Assembly (NCBI RefSeq): GCF_964194025.1 | Contig: NC_134470.1 | Span: 52,452,001 to 52,516,000, forward strand | Reading direction: 5' to 3' | DNA from: Convolutriloba macropyga | Taxonomy: Eukaryota | DNA: 64,000 nucleotides | Part shown: positions 1,580 through 64,000 of the stretch, one piece after another | Position numbering within the stretch: the first letter of the stretch is position 1 | Layout of the letters: each line of letters starts with the position of its first letter | Made by a program: the position numbers and the translations under genes | Notes under the pieces: generated by a model | Told to the model about the DNA's origin: nothing | Databases searched by the model: none | The model's input: the letters and a program-made list of their open reading frames with translations, nothing else

Positions 1580-3465
1580 TTTAAAAAAAATCAGCGGGGA
1601 TAACCCGTGGCACCTCAAATTATTTCTTGGCGCTATAAAACTGATTTTATGAAAATTATCAACATGCAAGAAAAAACAGCTCTATTTTCCTTTGACGGCA
1701 ATCAGAAACACATAATTTTTTTATCGGATAATCAGGCTATAAACATAAACTGACTTGCGACGGTTTTTGAAACATTTTAGCAGCAAGATCAGCATCCGTG
1801 CTCCATAGGTCATCATATCCACGTGCTGAAACATAAGTAGTCACATTGCCTCGGTGAATTATCATGAACAAACGATGAAATAAAAAATGGAAGCTTTTCT
1901 AAATATCGTAATTTTTTTCTCGGTGCATAGCAACTTAACTGGGAGTTTAAATATGCATCACGTGCCGATTGTGTTCGGGAGAAGATATTTTATAATTGAA
2001 AAACATTTATTCAAGAGATTTCAGGTTATTTTTTATGAAAACAAAAAGTGGATTGCCTTGAAACTCTAATTTAAACTAACGGGTCAATTTTGATGAAGGT
2101 AACATTTTAATGTACAATTCATCAGTGTATGAATAATTGTAATGGTGCCACCTTTTTTTTCAAAATACCGTTCCCATTGTGATCGGAAGTTTACTAACCG
2201 TCCAAGTTTTTCGTCTTTTTTGCTTGAATTCTTCTGTGCCCATCGATGCATAGCTCTGAAACGAACCAACAATAATCTAAAGTTTTGAGAGAAAACAATC
2301 TCGGCAACAGCTGCCATTGCAATTTTCCGGCCCTTGCAAACTATTGACATTTTAATATTAAAGCATGTTGAGTCAAGTCAGTTCATGTTTTTAATTGAAT
2401 GCTGTGGTCTAATTTATTGCTTCATGAAATTACATTTGAGCTTTTTTTCAAGCAAAATTCACATACTCTTTGTTCTCGTATCGTTTAACTATTTTCGTCA
2501 ATTGTTTTTGTGAAAAACTGATTAACGCTTGTTTTATTCCGTTAATTAGCAAAATTGTCTCACACAAATTAAAACCATCTATCATCTATAGCCACGCAAT
2601 CAAAGTATTCATAAAAATTACACAGAAGAAAATACAGCCCTAAATTGTGTCAATGTCCTCAAAATGCTCATGATTAGTAAATGCAAATCTATGTAAAACA
2701 GCAAATGGCTTACATAATGCTCCAACACGCCAAAACAATTTTAAAATTTCAGAACTTGATTATCACAGATGCAGTTCTTCAGTTGATTGAAGTAATTTGT
2801 TACACTTCTGATTGAACTTATTGAACTAGCGTGTTTTTTCCGATTAATGAAAATTCTTATTTTCAAAGGCCAGAACAATACCACATTTCTATGCTCACAA
2901 TAAAAACTGGAAACTAGAGTTTGGAAAGTTGTTGTAAGGATTTTTTTTGTTTATTAATAAAAAATATTCCCGTTTGTCATATTCTGCCTTCAAATTTGAC
3001 TACTGGTAGCTCATTGCAAGATTTTGATTCATTAAACAGGTCTACATTTATGAAGCATGGTCGTTTTGTTTTTATTTCCAAGTGAACACCATCATTTTTG
3101 TACATTTTTGTTTATTTGTACAGTGAACAGCTATACAATAGGGCACACTTTTTAACTGGAGCTGATGCATTTGTTTGTATGGAACCTTTAAACTCTAATA
3201 ATGCAATTCTCCTTACTTTTTTAGTACAAAACTATAATCTATATTATTTGAACACCGCTAGTCGTGGATAAAAGAAAAAAATGGCTTTTATCTATACCGC
3301 TACTCGTGGATAAAAGAGAAAAAAATTCAATAAAGATATCGGCTTTTTAAACTCTCGCATTCAAATTAAACTAACCTACAGTGGTTTTATTTCAACTGCT
3401 AAAACAATCCCGTGAGATACGGTAGAAATGGGAGTGGGACAGAACAGTGTTGTTTTTAAGCAGTT

Positions 3466-3973
3466 CCCAGACTGAGGTGTGCGCTCGAAATAGTCCCGAT
3501 CAGACCGTCCCATCCTGAAAGCGCCTTTGATCAGACTCAAACGCGCTCAAAATTTTTTGTGCGCTCGAAAATACCTGCTTTCCTGATCAGACCCATCTTC
3601 GCTCGAATGTACTTCTGATCAGACCCACTTGCGTTCGAAATCTTTTCTGATCAAACTCAGTTGCGCTCGAAATGTTCTCTGTTCTAAAGGCTTCAAGCGC
3701 ACGATTATAAACTATCTTGCGCTACCACTGTTTATGATCAGACGCAGTTGCGCTTGAACCGTTTATGATCAGACCAGCTGCACTTTGTGATCAGATTCAA
3801 GCTCGCTCAAAACTGGTTCTGACCAGACTCAAGCGCGCTCTAATCCGCCTCTGATCAAACTTAAGTGCGTTGCTGCCCTCGAATGCCCTGTAATTTCGAG
3901 CGTAAAACGGTCAAGTGTGCGCTCGAGCAGCTGGTCTGATCGAGATATTTTCGAGCGCACACCTCAGCCTGGG
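3466..3973. mobile_element. MITE with ~25-bp TIRs, possibly CMC/EnSpm-type
   Basis: CCCAGACTGAGGTGTGCGCTCGAAA ... TTTCGAGCGCACACCTCAGCCTGGG, flanked by TT on both sides. Interior has ~29-bp subrepeats containing TGATCAGAC and GCGCTCGAA. Confidence 0.8.
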
Positions 3974-5320
3974 TTGTGTTCAACGTCCGTCCTGACTCTT
4001 GGAAAAACCAAAGAATTGAAAATTTTCATAAAAGTTTCACATATAATGTCAACCTATCCTCATTTTCAAAAACGACGCAAATTCAAATTTAGATTCTTCT
4101 TCCATAAAGCATGTTTGCTAAAATAAAAAAAAACAGAGCACTTATCAAATTATTTAAATCAATTTTTGTTATTGTTGTGTGCTGCCAAAACTATTGTTTT
4201 CGAACTAAATGCTCATTACAATAGGTTAAAGATTCCATTTTGTTTTAAGAGAAAATTTCAAGTGCATAAATTTTTTTTGACCTAACTGAGATATGTATAG
4301 AATCATTTTAATAATATATGAAGAGTGAAATGTCAGAGACAGAACAGTTTTTCCTCTTTTTTCAATAATTTTTTCACGAAAAGTGAATACCTAGTTTTTA
4401 TTTTAGAGAAAAAAATGACAAAGTCTCGTTAAGACTCTATTTACTTTTTCGAGTTTTATAACGTTGCTGCTCTTTTATCTCTCCGTAAAAGATATCGATC
4501 AGCCAAAATTGAACAAAAAGCAAGGCGCCCATAATTATTCTAACCAACAACTAAAATTGAAGGTTTAGAACAATCACCCGATGTTCTTGAATGTTTCAAG
4601 AATAGAGACCCTATTTCAATTCAGTTGATCTTAACAAGATAATGCTCAGTTGTCTTTTAGTTTATCTTCAAATATCTTTTATTTTAGTTTTTGCCAATGT
4701 ATCATACATGTATATGAATAAAGATTCAATATTGGAAAAACATGAGCTCTCGAAAGGGGTTACCGCCCCCATCTTAGTGGGGCCAGAACCTGATGCCACC
4801 AATTCCAGGGGTTATAATTTCATCAGTACAATTTTCTTTTTCTTTTTTTTTGGGTGGAAGGGTGGCATAATGAAAAAGAGCCTAAGAGGGAGGCTGCTGG
4901 TCACAATAGGCATTCTTACCATGATTTGTTGGTACCTCTCTGAGCCGACAGCTATCTCAAAGTGACTTCTGTTCACGTTACTCATCTCTATCAGCTCTTT
5001 GTACCTCTCAGCTATCAACTCCTCCACCGTTTGTTCTGGTTAACATATAAATTAGCGGTAAAATAGATTTCGGAAAATAATCTGGTTTTGCTATCAATGA
5101 CTCCTGGTCAAAATTGAACACTCGGTTGCTTATTTCCAGGAATCAAGGAATGGATCATATAGTTTTAAGGGAACTTTGATAAGTTTCATGAAATGCATAA
5201 TCTTGTTGTGAGCACTATACCTCATTTGTCAGTGATCCCTAGAGACACGAGGTATATTGACGTATATATTTTGTATATAACAGTCCACTTCTCAAACGGA
5301 CTTCTAAGCTTTGTACGAAG

Positions 5321-57152: not shown

Positions 57153-58506
57153 CTCTTCTGATATATTTATCTCACTCCATTGTCACTTAAAAAAAGTCAC
57201 TACATTGTCTTTTAAAACATAAACCGACTAACGTCGGACAAATTGCTCTCGAAGGACAACTCTCAGTCCCTTGTCATTTGGGATCTTTTCCGTTTGTGGC
57301 CCCCAGTTTAGTGGGTGCATATTATTTGCACCCCCAGACGAACGTGCCATATTTTTACATAATGAATTACTATGTGATGACACGTGCTGTAAAGGGGGGG
57401 TACATAACGTACTGGGGGGAGGGCACAAACGGAAATCCGTCATTTGCTATGCTCCAATCATTTTTACTTTAGCAACAAACTTTACCTTTACTTCGGAGTG
57501 AGAGAACACTATAATATTGTATAGTGATAGTTGTCGGTAAATATACAATAAGTGTACATGATTTTTGCAGAAACACAAATACTTTTTATTTAAGTTCAAC
57601 GGGTCAGTGGTCATTTGAAACGGAAATAACGCCATGTGCTAGCTTGTTGGAGAGGAAGTGCTGTTGACTCGGCAATCAAAAACGTTTTCAATCAACTTTT
57701 GAATACCTGTAAATTTACACTCGTATCTCCCAGGTACAAGCGTAGTGAGTTCCACTTCAATGATACAAGATTAAAGAATGATTTAGAAGAGGATAAAACA
57801 GATGGAATATTTCCTACAAAAATTTATTGGTTAGTGAGCTTGTTATTCCTATAGCTTGCCGTAGGTAATTAAAGTTGTTGTTGAAAGGCTCTCTTTATAT
57901 TTCTAACTAGCAGGCCCGCAATGGCAACCTTTGATGTAGAAACGTTGATCCGTTTGGCTCATCTAAAGGCAGATAAAAAACGTTTTTCTATTCAGCGGCC
58001 AGTCATCTCAACTCCCAAAATTAGTAAAAACTATCGAAGCCTTCATATAGTAAAACATTCGTTAAAAAATTCCTTATGGGACAAAATTATTGCACGTTTA
58101 TGGGGCCTCTCGAAGCGTTTGTTTAAGAGCCACATAGAGCAGCATGGTAAAGCGAACAAATCCAGAAAGGTCATTGTCCTAAAATGGTCAAAGTAGATTG
58201 GTCAGAACCGAACGTGGGACAAAAGACTGTTAGTCAGGTGGTTATTACGAGGCTATGATGGCTTGAACGTATTCCTGCCAGAGGGAGGATTTACTGTCCT
58301 GGGTTCTGTTACCATTATCCATAAAATTGCTTTGACACTAAAATTTGGCCATTGCGATGAATAACTTTTGAAATCTGCCAAGAACTCTAAAGTCATGAGA
58401 GCTAAAAAAAGGAATTCTCGGTGAGTTTCGAACGACATAGGTTCGAACTACTTGGAAAGATTTGCGGATCAAAATGGTAATGGTGATACGCTAGCGCCGT
58501 TTGTTG

Positions 58507-58574
<68 letters not shown>
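58507..58574 (-). repeat. (TAA)n microsatellite 3' tail of the LINE
   Basis: ~22 ATT units starting ~54 bp beyond the ORF2 stop. Confidence 0.9.
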
Positions 58575-58627
58575 GGCTTCCACAAACGTGAGGGACTGCT
58601 CCCGCAAAAATTATATAAATAGATGAA

Positions 58628-61522
58628 TCATACCAGTTTAAGTTTGTTTGTTAAGTTTATTTCGTTTGAGGACCGACATTTTTCGCAGAGACAGATAAAT
58701 GTTATGGAACACCAATTTTCGATGCTGAAATAAATATTATAGTACTTCCACATCAAGTTTAAGATTCGATTTTTGAGTCCAACTGGTTGAAAGAAATTAA
58801 CATTTGAATCAATGATATTTGCTCTATATGTGGTTCGATAGAAGAAATTTGACCGCTGAAATTCTTTTTTGATTTCAGGCAACACAAACCGAAAAATTGA
58901 CCGTCTTTGCACAATATTAATATGCTCGCTGATGTTGAACGCATAATAATTGTTCACCAATTTCGATAGCAAGAGAAGATCTGTTAGCACAATGTAATAG
59001 TTGAGAGGTAATAAGTTCAGGGATCTCAGTCGTTCGCAATAATCAAGGTTCGGTAGGATCCATTTCGAAACTTTTTCTTGAGATTTTTCAAGGAGTCGCA
59101 TGTCAGATTTTGAAGGCATATAACAGTTAGATCCATAGATTAAGATTGGAATAAGCGTACTCTTATAAAGATTTAGTTTTGCAGTAACCGTCAGGAGATA
59201 TGATGTGTTTCTTTTAATTTGGTTGAAGAATTTGTTGGCTTTACGAGTCCGCAATTCTACATGTTCCTTCCAAGTGAGGCTTTCGTTCATAGTGATACCA
59301 AGGTCCTCCACAGTTCTCGATTGTTCCAGCGACCATTGACCCAAAACTGGACTTAATCTCGACTTGATATTGAAATTTATGTACTGACATTTCGACAAAT
59401 TGAAGCTGATGTTATTTTCGTAACTCCAACGCAATATTGAATCTAGATCTTGTTTGATTCCATTTGCGTTTCCAAGATTTTCATTATATAATAAATTGAT
59501 TTCGTCAGCAAAAAGAAAGACTTTGGATTTGAAAACAGTTTCAGGTAAGTCATTAATGAAAATAAGAAAAAGTAGGGGCCCAAGTATTGAGCCCTGAGGT
59601 ACACCCGAGGTGACCGGCGAATTCTTCGAATTTAGATTTCCAATTTTCACGTATTGCAGTCTGTCGCTCAGGTAACTCTTTAAAATCTCGAACAGCTTGC
59701 CACCTATTCCAATGCAATTGATCTTACGTAAAAGTATTCCATGATCAATTTGGTCGAAAGCTTTGGAAAAGGCAAAGAGAAGAGAGCTATTTTCTCGATT
59801 GTTCTCAGAACAGAAATTGTATATCTTATCTAAGTAGGTTATCTTTTGAAGAATAACTGATCTTCTTTCACGAAAACCGTACTGTGAGTCAGTTATGAGT
59901 CCTTTGAAAAAATTTACAATTGAGCCATACAACAATCTTTCTAGAACTTTCGAGACAATGCATAATAGTGTTACAGGACGATAATTTACAACATCTGCTT
60001 TCGATTCTTTTTTCTTGAAAATTGGGCTAACTGCTCCTATTTTCCATGCACTAGGATAGGTTCCAAGGCGCCTAAAATTTCTGAATAACTCAAAGATGGA
60101 TTTCGTAAGTTCTTTTGCGCAGTTCCTGAGGACAACTGCAGGCAAGTTATCAGGCCCACATGACTTTGATACGTCTAATGACCCAAGAATTTCAACTATT
60201 GCTTCTTCCGTCACAGTAAAACTGTTCAAAATTCTATTTTCATTCAAAGTGCTTTTGAAGACCGATGACACGGTGAAAACTGAACAGAAGTATTTATTAA
60301 AGAGAGAGGCTTTTTCAGCATCACAGTTTGCTAAGTCTTTGTTCCATTTAACCTGTGGCGGAACGGACGCTCCTTTTTGTAAGCTTTTAAAATACTTGTA
60401 CATGGCTTGAGAATTTCGTGAGTTGAAAAGCTTTGATTCGTAATTTTTCTGGTCTAGGTCTACCGCTTCTGCTAGACTGGTTCTCGACGTTTCTATCCTG
60501 AGTCTCAACGAATCATTGTTGGCTAGTGAATTCTGTTTTCTCTGTAGCGTGTTAAGCTTTTTCATTAGATGTGATGTCGCAGGCGTGGTCCAGGGTGGCA
60601 AATTGGATCTATGCGTACTCCGTCTTGGTGTGAATTTAGTGATCGCCTCGAATAACCAATGATACCACTCGCTGAGCATCCGATCGCAGTTGCTATAACA
60701 AATAGGATTAAAAGGGTTAAGACTTAGATTTTCCTTCAGACCAACGTAATCGCATTTACAGAAGCTCAAAATTTTGTGCAAATCGGTTTTCTCGTTCTTA
60801 GCAGGACTCAGGTCAAGATCTAATAATATAGGTATGTGATCAGATAAACTAAAAGTTTTGAGCAAAGAGTCGTCGCAATTGACGTCGATAACTATGCTGT
60901 CATCATTAACGAAAATTTGATCGAGTATGTTTTTACCACAAGTGGGAAAGAAAACAACGGGAATAAAATTTAGGCAATCAAATAGATCGACCAATTGTTT
61001 CTCATATAAGTCGGCTGACTCTAGTGTTTTCCAATTGACAGAAGGAAGATTAAAATCTCCTACTACTATGACTTTTATCTCTCTCCACTCATCGTTGTCT
61101 AGAACGCAGAAGAAAGAGTTGAATTCGTCAATTGTGACTCGGTATTTGCTGTTACTAGGAGGGTTATACAAACACAAAATTAGTACCTTTTCGTTATTAA
61201 CAGTTATGAGCGAACCTGCAAACGCAGACGCTAATTTGTCATTCAGATTCTTAACATCAATTGGGAAAGAAGTAATGTTGTTCCGCACGTCAATCATTAC
61301 ACCTCCATGTTTGCTCTTCAGATTTGCATTTCTTTCACTTCTGTAGAGCTGATAATTTTGCAGGAAAAGTTCACTATCGCTGATGTCAGCTGTCAACCAA
61401 GTTTCAGTTAAAGCGATGATGTCATATGCAGAGGTTTCAGCCGCGACAGCAAACTTCCTTCGACGCTCTAAATTTAGGAGGCTTCTTGTATTGAAAACTA
61501 AGCAGCTAAGAGAATTTTGTAG
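58628..61522 (-). CDS. LINE ORF2: apurinic endonuclease plus reverse transcriptase (no ATG start; RT catalytic residues altered)
   Basis: FNTRSL, IIALTETWL, GGV, YNPP, GDFN, SDH (APE); GPDN, NYRPVTLL, QYGFR, FSKAFD, SGVPQGSILGPLLFLIFINDL, FADE (RT). Open from 61522 to 58628. Confidence 0.95.
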   Translation of the reverse strand, partial: LQNSLSCLVFNTRSLLNLERRRKFAVAAETSAYDIIALTETWLTADISDSELFLQNYQLYRSERNANLKSKHGGVMIDVRNNITSFPIDVKNLNDKLASAFAGSLITVNNEKVLILCLYNPPSNSKYRVTIDEFNSFFCVLDNDEWREIKVIVVGDFNLPSVNWKTLESADLYEKQLVDLFDCLNFIPVVFFPTCGKNILDQIFVNDDSIVIDVNCDDSLLKTFSLSDHIPILLDLDLSPAKNEKTDLHKILSFCKCDYVGLKENLSLNPFNPICYSNCDRMLSEWYHWLFEAITKFTPRRSTHRSNLPPWTTPATSHLMKKLNTLQRKQNSLANNDSLRLRIETSRTSLAEAVDLDQKNYESKLFNSRNSQAMYKYFKSLQKGASVPPQVKWNKDLANCDAEKASLFNKYFCSVFTVSSVFKSTLNENRILNSFTVTEEAIVEILGSLDVSKSCGPDNLPAVVLRNCAKELTKSIFELFRNFRRLGTYPSAWKIGAVSPIFKKKESKADVVNYRPVTLLCIVSKVLERLLYGSIVNFFKGLITDSQYGFRERRSVILQKITYLDKIYNFCSENNRENSSLLFAFSKAFDQIDHGILLRKINCIGIGGKLFEILKSYLSDRLQYVKIGNLNSKNSPVTSGVPQGSILGPLLFLIFINDLPETVFKSKVFLFADEINLLYNENLGNANGIKQDLDSILRWSYENNISFNLSKCQYINFNIKSRLSPVLGQWSLEQSRTVEDLGITMNESLTWKEHVELRTRKANKFFNQIKRNTSYLLTVTAKLNLYKSTLIPILIYGSNCYMPSKSDMRLLEKSQEKVSKWILPNLDYCERLRSLNLLPLNYYIVLTDLLLLSKLVNNYYAFNISEHINIVQRRSIFRFVLPEIKKEFQRSNFFYRTTYRANIIDSNVNFFQPVGLKNRILNLMWKYYNIYFSIENWCSITFICLCEKCRSSNEINLTNKLKLV

Positions 61523-62374
61523 TCAATTTTGATTACGCGACAGTTTCAAAACATTTTCTTCTTCGCTCGTTAAAATCAGGTCCTTTACTTTTTGACCCTT
61601 AAAGTATAGCTGTTGGTTTTTAATACAAATGTCTAGTTTCGAAGCTCCACAGGCTATTAGGGCACGCCTTTTGAGTAGCATTGATTTCTCGACTTGAATT
61701 TCTTCTTGCTTCAGAGCTCTTGACAGGAAGACAGGAAAGTCATAATCGACCAGCTTCCGTCATTTTGCGAGAAGCTTTCTCACTTCCCACGGACTGCTTA
61801 CAGTTACCAGCATGGTTCTTGGCTGCTTCCGATTTGGATTCTGCTTCCCTAACCTCCTGATGTTCTGCACATTTGTTTGTTCACCAAGGAAATGAATTAA
61901 ATTATCAACTTGATTGTGCTCCGCGTTGAGCAGTTCTTCAATTGAATTGACTTTGGCTTCAGGAATACCATTGATGCGAATTTGGTTTAAAATGACCTGA
62001 TCTGGCGCACTCCTGGTAAAGCTCCGTTTTTCGAGCGCACATGGATTCTCTGTATAAACTTCCTTAACGCCTTCAGATACAAATTTTTTCAGTTGCTCAT
62101 TCATTTTGGAGCAATTAGCTAAGTTTTCCTTGACTACCTCATTTACGGTTTCCTTAAAGTCATCAATGTTTGGCAGTTCGTTGACTAGCTTACGTGTGGT
62201 TTTGTGTTGGGCTAATAAATCGCGGAAGAGAGAAATGACCCAATCTTTTTGCATTTTATGTAGATGTTTACTGACAGTGCTCACATCTTCTTCAATCAAT
62301 TCATCAATCGTCGGATAATAGTCCTTCGATTGTGATTCGAGTCTTTTTCTCGCAGCGTGGTCTACGTTTGACAT
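61523..62374 (-). CDS. LINE ORF1 (coiled coil plus RRM-like), with an in-frame TGA at 61762-61760
   Basis: Helical N-terminus, IRINGIPE...IRRLGK....PRTMLV motif. After the TGA the frame continues VFLSRAL...KRRAL...IKNQQLYFKG to the TGA at 61525-61523. Confidence 0.82.
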
Positions 62375-62550
62375 ATTGATTTTCCTTACAAGAAAGCACG
62401 TGAGTATTCCGGTTAACTACAGGGATTTCTCAACAATTGTTGCAAGCTTGTTGAACGTTATCTCTTGATATGAATTAGAACGATGGAGCTAAATCTATTT
62501 TATGCGAGAAAACACTCGGAAGGCGGGTAAAGGAAGTTGTTTTTCGCCAG

Positions 62551-62662
62551 CACCTACGAGACAACAAAGTATCTACTTTAGGCGCGGTGAAAAACAAACA
62601 AAATAAAAACTGTAAACTTTCCTCAGACACCTACGAGACAACAAAGTATCTACCCTAGGCGC
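62551..62662 (-). repeat. Pair of 35-bp direct repeats upstream of ORF1
   Basis: CACCTACGAGACAACAAAGTATCTAC(TT/CC)TAGGCGC at 62551-62585 and 62628-62662. Confidence 0.9.
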
Positions 62663-62697
62663 TTCAGAAGGAAACAGTTTTTTTAATAAAACTAACG

Positions 62698-63318
62698 TTA
62701 TTCGCTCTCGTCGAGTTTCTCTTTACTCAGTTTTTGTCGCCTTCTCTGTCTGCTGCCCTTCTTATTCTTCTTCGATCTCTTTCGCTGAATGAGCTTCCGT
62801 AAGTTGTCACGGTGTTCGTGCACTATATTGAACAGATGCGACTCCAAGTCCACTTGTGGATGTACTTGTTTGAGCTGGTGAAGAATAAGCTTATTGTTCT
62901 TCTTCCTATAAGAGAGGAGATTTCTTGCGTCAATAGTTAGAATCTTTGTGTTTTTCAGGAGATGAAACAAATTTGGTGCTCCCTCTCTTTGTAGGTAAAT
63001 AAAGGCAGCAATTTTATCTTTGAACTGCTCAATCAAGTTGATCAACTGGCTAGAACTGCAGGCCGTATTGTTGTTGCTTTTATGCTTACTGACAGAATTG
63101 CTAATCACGTCGTGCCAGAGAATAATGTCTCGCTTAAAACCAATTGATCCTCGTCTAAATAAATAATTCAAATCTTTCAGCTTGTTTGTTGTGGCTGGGT
63201 TAATGCTAAGTCCTCGAGCAGCAAACGCAGATTTACGATCGCTAAGAACTTGTCGCAAAGAGAAGGTTGAATGCTTTCGAATATTGTCCAGGCAACTTGC
63301 ACCAATATAGAATACCAT
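62698..63318 (-). CDS. SGNH-hydrolase/esterase-like protein with basic C-terminal tail (probable extra LINE ORF)
   Basis: 206-aa intact ORF from ATG 63318. YIGAS, RGLS, ILWHDVISNS and QVHP fall in SGNH block I/II/III/V order; K/R-rich C-terminus. Confidence 0.55.
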   Translation of the reverse strand: MVFYIGASCLDNIRKHSTFSLRQVLSDRKSAFAARGLSINPATTNKLKDLNYLFRRGSIGFKRDIILWHDVISNSVSKHKSNNNTACSSSQLINLIEQFKDKIAAFIYLQREGAPNLFHLLKNTKILTIDARNLLSYRKKNNKLILHQLKQVHPQVDLESHLFNIVHEHRDNLRKLIQRKRSKKNKKGSRQRRRQKLSKEKLDESE

Positions 63319-64000
63319 ATCAGTACCGGTCTCTAAAAACCGTTCAAGAGAACGGACAACCAAGATACCCGGATTTTCATAGTAAGCTGAAACTATTTAA
63401 TAAGTTTATCTGAGCAAATTTTGGGAAAATATGAGATTTTACGAATGCCAGACAATGCTATTCGAAGTTCGTTCAACAAGTCAGAAAATAGGTGCAACCT
63501 ATACAACTGTTATTTTTGTTTTGGCTGCTACTAGTGGCCGTTTCTGTCTTGAGACCACAAAGCCGGAAGGAAAATAATTTTGCTCTAGATTTTTGGTGCA
63601 AATAGGCAACTAATTGGCCTGTGAAACTTGACATTCGAACCACGCTTATGGAATCGGATGAAAAGCACGAATCGGGGCGAAGATTCTTGACACTCTATGA
63701 GAATTAGATCTTAACCCAGTGCAATAATATAAAAGACGTTGTTTACTGACGCTGGGGAGCAGCAACCTTTCGAGTGCGAAATTGTCTCTTGCGTTTATTT
63801 TGATTCATATTTACTGAAGCTCTTTGACTGATAATTTGAATGTGATAAATTTTGGAAATCGTTAAAGCACTATTTGTAATGAAATTTTTTTTTCTGCTGA
63901 AACTTTCATAAAATAAAACTGTTGAAATATTTCTGCTGATAAGGTTACGCAAATCAAAATTTCTCATGCTGTGGATAAATTATTTCAGTGCCTTCTCACC

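Follow-up and report, generated by a model that had tools for sequence, protein, structure and literature searches.

An in-frame UGA-CUA junction as a candidate readthrough signal between ORF1 and ORF2 of a LINE family in Convolutriloba macropyga and in related LINEs

Analysis of a 64-kb stretch of Convolutriloba macropyga DNA (hereafter the window) showed a copy of a long interspersed nuclear element (LINE) of the apurinic/apyrimidinic endonuclease (APE) type on the minus strand, approximately 4.9 kb in length and with three open reading frames (ORFs), named here ORF0, ORF1 and ORF2. In this LINE, the in-frame UGA-CUA at the end of ORF1 is probably a programmed readthrough signal which yields a rare fusion of the ORF1 and ORF2 proteins (ORF1p and ORF2p). 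In the proposed design of the family, ORF1 and ORF2 would form one reading frame divided by a single UGA in UGA-CUA context. Most ribosomes would stop at the UGA and release ORF1p, while a small share would decode it by a near-cognate tRNA and continue into ORF2. The product of continued translation would be a fusion of ORF1p, linker, endonuclease and reverse transcriptase (RT), and this fusion would be the only, or the main, source of ORF2 activity. The low ORF2:ORF1 ratio would be set by readthrough, and the coiled coil may tether the enzyme to the ORF1p/RNA particle as in Gag-Pol. The occurrence of readthrough, its rate and the fusion as the active form are what we infer from sequence. With somewhat less assurance, we favour a wider reading in which a large and widespread group of animal LINEs would make endonuclease and RT only as an ORF1p-ORF2p fusion through UGA-CUA, in a Gag-Pol-like manner and with the hexamer of the alphaviruses, and in which this trait would have been gained or kept several times independently.

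The ORF1-ORF2 junction and its copies in the genome

ORF1 (61523..62374, minus strand) starts with the ATG at 62374 and spans 283 codons up to the TGA at 61525-61523. This stop is followed by CTA CAA AAT in the same frame, and the spacings among positions 62374, 61762, 61525 and 61396 are all multiples of three. The junction hexamer TGA-CTA (61520..61525, minus strand) consists of the ORF1 stop and the first ORF2 codon, and is a candidate type II readthrough signal. The linker from the CTA codon to the first endonuclease motif (61495..61519, minus strand) is without an in-frame ATG or near-cognate start. ORF2 (58628..61522, minus strand), as delimited by Pfam and direct reading, has 964 open codons and ends in its own stop, TGA-TTC (TGA at 58630-58628); it holds the APE endonuclease at approximately 61495-60836 and the RT at approximately 60004-59291.

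The first in-frame ATG past the junction stop was found at codon 76, behind the invariant catalytic Asn (codon 11, in VFNTRS) and Glu (codon 40, in LTETW), both of which were taken from the endonuclease alignment. In the window family, the ten codons from the junction stop to the catalytic Asn contain no ATG and no one-base neighbour of ATG. An earlier sequence-only reading of the window had described ORF1 as ending in TGA at 61525-61523 with CTA next and ORF2 in the same frame, had placed the first Met inside the endonuclease domain with no ATG before the first endonuclease motifs, and had reported a second in-frame ORF1 stop, TGA-CGG, at 61762-61760; all of these were borne out by direct reading.

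The genome (1.18 Gb) was searched for further copies of the family, which gave at least 43 matches to the junction region, and the stop codons were compared in 37 other aligned copies with 76-98% identity. The junction stop was TGA in 29 of these copies and the codon after it was CTA in 34, CTG in two and CGA in one. The linker was almost indel-free across copies. Judged from these alignments, the in-frame TGA-CTA is the ancestral state of the window family and has persisted through many copying rounds. The copies without TGA at the junction carried AGA (two copies, neighbours on one chromosome), CGA (three copies, old and clustered), TGT, TGC or TAA (one copy each). On the same comparison, these exceptions amount to five independent changes, of which four gave sense codons, a pattern expected of decay after insertion. 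The sequence-only reading had proposed that the fixity of TGA-CTA among family copies be checked, with sense codons at the junction or a variable frame or context as signs against it; TGA and CTA were kept at the frequencies given above together with the shared frame, and neither sign was found above the expected decay.

The CGA and AGA copies were also mapped. Three old copies (L034-L036) lie within 7 kb at G000:C8:1747551-1754968, with 78-80% identity to the window copy and a junction of CGA-CTA or CGA-CGA, while two copies with AGA at the junction (L009 and L010) are 47 kb apart at G000:C12:1519233-1567314. Each set seems to have arisen by local duplication of a mutated copy and not to be a single-ORF subfamily.

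These data bear on the possibility of a dead element, in which a former single ORF or two normal ORFs were interrupted by an inactivating TGA that was then copied. In its favour, the window copy holds one clear nonsense mutation (61762-61760), the junction is CGA in three old clustered copies and AGA in two, and CGA often mutates to TGA through its CpG. However, the junction TGA was found in copies from 81% to 98% identity, which shows that it survived successive copying rounds, and the same hexamer was found at the same place in at least 20 unrelated families of the genome and in families from other samples. In addition, the sense-codon variants amount to four events among 37 copies, which is the level of decay, and CGACTA was without genome-wide excess. 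A dead element is thus scarcely credible and, as far as sequence comparison goes, is already contradicted by the multi-family conservation.

The upstream TGA followed by CGG within ORF1 (61760..61762, minus strand) behaved differently from the junction stop in the comparison with the 37 other copies. The codon at this position was GGA in 29 copies, AGA in four, and GGT, TTA, CGA and TGA in one each, and the sole other copy with TGA is old and carries 16 stops. The comparison identifies the upstream TGA-CGG as a nonsense mutation of the window copy, which is therefore unable to make full ORF1p. The sequence-only reading had left two options for this codon, and only that of a plain mutation stood; the second tuning stop was ruled out by GGA in 29 of the 37 copies, and TGA-CGG was not fixed in the family.

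Genome-wide patterns, distant relatives and competing explanations

Related LINE endonuclease starts number in the thousands in the genome, according to a protein search. Junctions were counted over the whole genome with a pattern made of a hexamer, N(12-42) and the motif FN(T/V/A)RS, and with the reversed pattern as control. TGACTA was observed 246 times compared to 42 in the control. The corresponding counts were 52 and 187 for TAACTA, 61 and 52 for TGATTA, 25 and 38 for CGACTA, and 42 and 39 for TGACTG. In the window, TGACTA-N(12-42)-FNxRS occurred once and was found in none of 100 shuffles. The junction pattern is thus beyond chance both in the window and in the genome. The spacer was a multiple of three in 86 of 100 TGACTA matches listed, in 20 of 52 matches for TAACTA and in 21 of 61 for TGATTA. 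In an unbiased test with one fixed spacing, TGA was found 155 times compared to 81 in the control, and approximately 42 of the 100 matches listed were TGACTA; TAA and TAG together showed no excess (242 compared to 334 in the control). Overall, the counts and frame tallies indicate that the stop must be TGA, that the next codon must be CTA and not a synonymous Leu codon, and that the stop must lie in the ORF2 frame. The TGACTA spacers fell into at least 20 unrelated sequences, and at least 20 LINE families with TGACTA are therefore present in the genome.

Two variants of the junction were considered and rejected for this genome. Families with a sense codon in place of the stop, and thus a single ORF, received no support, since CGACTA was without excess and in the single CGACTA family that recurs a TAA follows a few codons later. 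CTG in the role of a general substitute for CTA showed no overall excess, with the exceptions of one small clustered family and decayed copies.

Distant ORF2 relatives were obtained from a set of 5.8 billion proteins and from metagenome contigs scanned with the endonuclease alignment. The metagenome scan produced 80 loci, each of which was walked upstream in frame. The closest ORF2 proteins in the protein set were only 32% and 38% identical (contigs L069 and L070). Both contigs had a homologous ORF1 (27-29% identity) that ended in TGA-CTA in frame with ORF2, with the first endonuclease motif 6 and 12 codons past the junction, respectively. An in-frame TGA-CTA junction was likewise found in L071, a JGI metagenome contig with 28% identity. 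Taken together, the relatives with an in-frame TGA-CTA or TGA-CTG had 27-38% ORF2 identity, came from other samples and had unrelated flanking codons. The separating stop was TGA in all 10 metagenome or ENA loci with a long in-frame open stretch before ORF2, and the codon after it was CTA in six (L069, L070, L071, L075, L077 and L105) and CTG in L127 and L096. The linkers of the other families varied in sequence and in length, with the length a multiple of three. The type of ORF1 also varied among the in-frame loci, and that of L077 has a PHD finger. In families with ORF1 out of the ORF2 frame, the ORF1 stop was mostly TAA or TAG and ORF1 overlapped or abutted ORF2; the usual LINE arrangements were seen in L072-L074, namely an ATG that follows 8 nt after the stop and is in another frame, an overlap of 59 nt, and an overlap in the form of ATGA.

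The ORF2 tree placed the window family, L069 and L070 in one clade (support 100) with L077 as sister (98). L127, L071 and L096 branched apart from it, between families without an in-frame junction. A single clade of all families with an in-frame TGA-CTR (CTA or CTG) was rejected in the approximately unbiased test (p-AU 1.6e-4), which means that the trait has arisen or been retained on several occasions.

The junction showed three features of a type II readthrough signal: the UGA is directly followed by CUA, a long in-frame coding region without its own start lies downstream, and the stop and its context are kept in diverged relatives while the neighbouring sequence drifts. UGACUA is one of two type II readthrough hexamers, with high basal readthrough and a downstream structure that is needed only conditionally; Sindbis virus, O'nyong-nyong virus and a dicistrovirus employ this hexamer, which also overlaps the cellular UGA-CUAG (PMC13517186). 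The proposal of the sequence-only reading, that ORF2 is made by programmed readthrough like gag-pol, draws support from the family copies, the distant relatives, the at least 20 further families of the genome and the control hexamers at background level, all of which are consistent with it.

Several points weigh against readthrough. Folding of the 150 nt past the stop in seven families showed no shared or unusually stable RNA structure (z -1.5 to +1.0), and the downstream fold proposed as a check by the sequence-only reading thus gave no common stem; the hexamer would therefore act alone. Neither CTA nor CTG follows the in-frame stop in L076 (TGA-CAA) and L108 (TGA-AGC). Approximately one quarter of the other TGACTA families of the genome, as well as L069, hold an in-frame ATG in the linker, and these could also use reinitiation. 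Furthermore, for the other TGACTA families of the genome the reading covered hexamer, spacer and motif. Finally, ORF2 of human L1 starts without an AUG (PMC5972666), and a missing ATG alone consequently proves little.

Termination-reinitiation, the main rival reading, in which a 40S subunit would restart a few codons past the UGA without an AUG and ORF2p would be a free protein, is judged unlikely as the explanation of the junction. It is the accepted route in the studied LINEs (PMC5972666, PMC2881922, PMC5009743), an in-frame ATG lies just before the endonuclease start in some TGACTA families and in L069, and an ATGA overlap or a stop followed by 8 nt and ATG is present in other LINE families of the same data (L074 and L072). 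However, reinitiation gives no reason for the invariant TGA, for CTA over commoner Leu codons when TGATTA and TGACTG are at background, or for a stop in the ORF2 frame, which was found in 86 of 100 TGACTA matches listed compared to approximately one third in the controls. The window family offers no usable restart codon, with neither an ATG nor a one-base neighbour of it ahead of the catalytic Asn, and only a minority of the other families contain an ATG, roughly three quarters of the TGACTA families having no in-frame ATG in the spacer. In the families with an ATG, reinitiation may operate alongside readthrough.

Other means of decoding or removing the UGA are highly improbable. Selenocysteine insertion, adenosine-to-inosine editing of UGA to UGG, a host code with UGA as sense and ribosome hopping would each likewise keep the frame. 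Against them, the own stop of ORF2 is TGA and the intact ORF1 and ORF2 are without any other in-frame TGA; UGA is therefore a stop in this host, and a variant genetic code appears unlikely from the coding sequences. The folds of the seven families showed no conserved RNA structure near the stop that would fit a selenocysteine insertion sequence (SECIS) or an editing site, and the specific requirement for CTA matches the known readthrough context (PMC13517186).

Two other arrangements of stop and start codons were observed in the genome. A LINE family at G000:C1:47669538-47669578, C3:55078020-55078060, C7:21304862-21304902 and C7:26288928-26288968 has TGA followed by CGA, CAA or CAG, with an in-frame ATG four codons on; from this arrangement it may use reinitiation or a leaky context of another kind. 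An abundant repeat with many sites (e.g., G000 C1:1553767-1553807 and C2:29215245-29215285) has a conserved TAG-ATG-TAATGG just before an FN-like motif. Its overlapping stop and start codons are reminiscent of the UAAUG coupling of SART1, and if the repeat is a LINE junction, the genome hosts both strategies.

Anatomy and classification of the element

The 5' end and a short 5' untranslated region (UTR) were located at 63364..63410 (minus strand), where most long copies start matching at approximately 63410 (about query position 491 of 62375-63900). ORF0, an esterase-like ORF of 221 codons taken from the ORF list, follows at 62698..63363 (minus strand). It is included in copies with 76-98% identity, whose starts lie approximately 50 nt ahead of it, and is therefore counted as part of the element. 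ORF0 in the window was without a significant Pfam match, and the ORF at the same position in the relative L069 (2248-2841, 197 codons) had weak GDSL-lipase matches (E 0.0016) below the Pfam cut-off. On these sequence comparisons, the esterase-like ORF0 is part of the element as a separate first cistron, and the LINE group is described as having three ORFs.

A spacer of 323 nt separates ORF0 from ORF1 (62375..62697, minus strand) and on direct reading contained two direct repeats of approximately 35 nt. The repeats, at approximately 62662-62627 and 62585-62551 on the minus strand, are 77 nt apart and nearly identical, and are possibly an internal start or promoter element.

ORF1, which is broken in the window copy, had a weak Pfam match to the Transposase_22 RRM. 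A profile of three ORF1s matched the LINE-1 ORF1p structures 2w7a (E 1.1e-4) and 2yko (E 5.7e-4). By these profile matches, ORF1 is assigned to the L1-type ORF1p with a coiled coil, an RRM and a short C-terminal part, and hence to the RNA-binding type. For the ORF2 frame, Pfam showed Exo_endo_phos at residues 10-229 (E 2.2e-6), Exo_endo_phos_2 (E 4.2e-10) and RVT_1 at residues 507-744 (E 2.6e-29). Downstream of ORF2, direct reading showed a 3' UTR of approximately 55 nt and an (ATA)n microsatellite tail at approximately 58574-58507, which together occupy 58507..58627 (minus strand).

The matches, at least 43, were found on many chromosomes, several of them beginning inside the element with the 5' part missing, and no long terminal repeats (LTRs) were found. 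The element therefore has the features of a LINE, with an APE endonuclease followed by RT, an ORF1 of the RNA-binding type, dispersed copies and a simple-repeat tail. The microsatellite tail, the L1-type ORF1 and the esterase ORF suggest the CR1/L2 group, only by resemblance to its description (PMC4120745). The protein atlas clusters for the LINE were labelled RVT_1/Exo_endo_phos only. A search of public sequencing runs yielded no RNA run. In four DNA-like public runs from the same organism, made up of short unitigs of the repeat family, the summed contig depth over 58450-63450, which does not equal copy number, rose from approximately 800-1300 in the 5' part to approximately 3000-5000 in the 3' part, as expected if many copies are without the 5' end.

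Significance and comparison with known systems

How ORF2 is translated from a two-cistron LINE RNA is a long-standing open point, for which textbooks offer reinitiation (L1, SART1) and 2A skipping. Reviews on LINE translation and recoding name these two and not readthrough (PMC5009743, PMC5972666, PMC3894237, PMC4120745, PMC2881922). No description of readthrough in LINEs was found in the full-text literature searched, the coverage of which excludes most subscription journals and the Repbase notes, so that an earlier mention is possible. If readthrough takes place, the conserved in-frame UGA-CUA of many families would add a third, Gag-Pol-like route, would account for the setting of the ORF2:ORF1 ratio and for ORF2p remaining with the RNA that encodes it, and would predict a fusion protein that nobody looks for.

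The junction also matters for annotation, as gene callers begin such ORF2s at an internal Met or at non-ATG codons and lose catalytic residues (e.g., protein P0002 on L070). In the automatic calls at L070:4001-5998 (P0002) and L071:1717, the start of ORF2 has been placed on an internal Met or a non-ATG codon that lies close to the catalytic Asn or behind it, so that proteins of this LINE group stand in the databases with a truncated N-terminus.

Among known systems, the opal stop between nsP3 and nsP4 of the alphaviruses (Sindbis and O'nyong-nyong; type II of Beier and Grimm) likewise has UGA-CUA between an abundant upstream product and a scarce polymerase. Chikungunya virus carries this CUA too, but with CGA (Arg) where the other two have the UGA (PMC13517186), a parallel to the three old LINE copies with CGA. 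However, the alphavirus product is an RNA virus polyprotein that is processed by a protease, whereas the LINE has no protease and its fusion would stay whole. Several alphaviruses also have an extended downstream stem-loop, while none was found at the LINE junction. In cellular genes with UGA-CUAG (OPRL1, MDH1 and others), the UGA-CUA core by itself, with no structure, suffices for readthrough at the percent level in animal cells (PMC13517186). The seventh base in these genes is G and the C-terminal extensions are short, whereas in the LINE families the seventh base varies between C, T, G and A.

In the studied LINEs, human LINE-1 and silkworm SART1, the element is of the same kind and a low-level second ORF is expressed from one mRNA, and the ORFs of human L1 are also separate cistrons. 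SART1 uses a UAAUG overlap and human L1 a 63-nt spacer with an AUG-independent start, and neither has a conserved UGA-CUA (PMC5009743, PMC5972666, PMC2881922). The LINEs with 2A 'StopGo' sequences (L1Tc, Ingi, sea-urchin and other CR1/L2/Rex1-type elements) also rely on recoding for several products per frame (PMC3708506, PMC3894237). In contrast to the present junction, 2A has no stop codon and gives equal, separated products, whereas the UGA would give unequal amounts and a fusion; no NPGP motif was found at the window junction.

The gammaretroviral Gag-Pol readthrough and the gag-pol readthrough or frameshift systems of LTR retrotransposons share the logic of the proposed LINE route, in which a nucleic-acid-binding structural protein and an RT lie in one frame over one leaky stop. 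The likeness extends to a low fixed ratio and to a fusion that is able to join the particle, which for the LINE is proposed. Moloney murine leukaemia virus has a type III UAG-GGA with an obligatory pseudoknot, whereas the LINE has a type II UGA-CUA with no detected structure. Finally, the Gag-Pol systems belong to LTR and retroviral elements, while the UGA-CUA junction described here lies in a non-LTR LINE that copies itself by target-primed reverse transcription.

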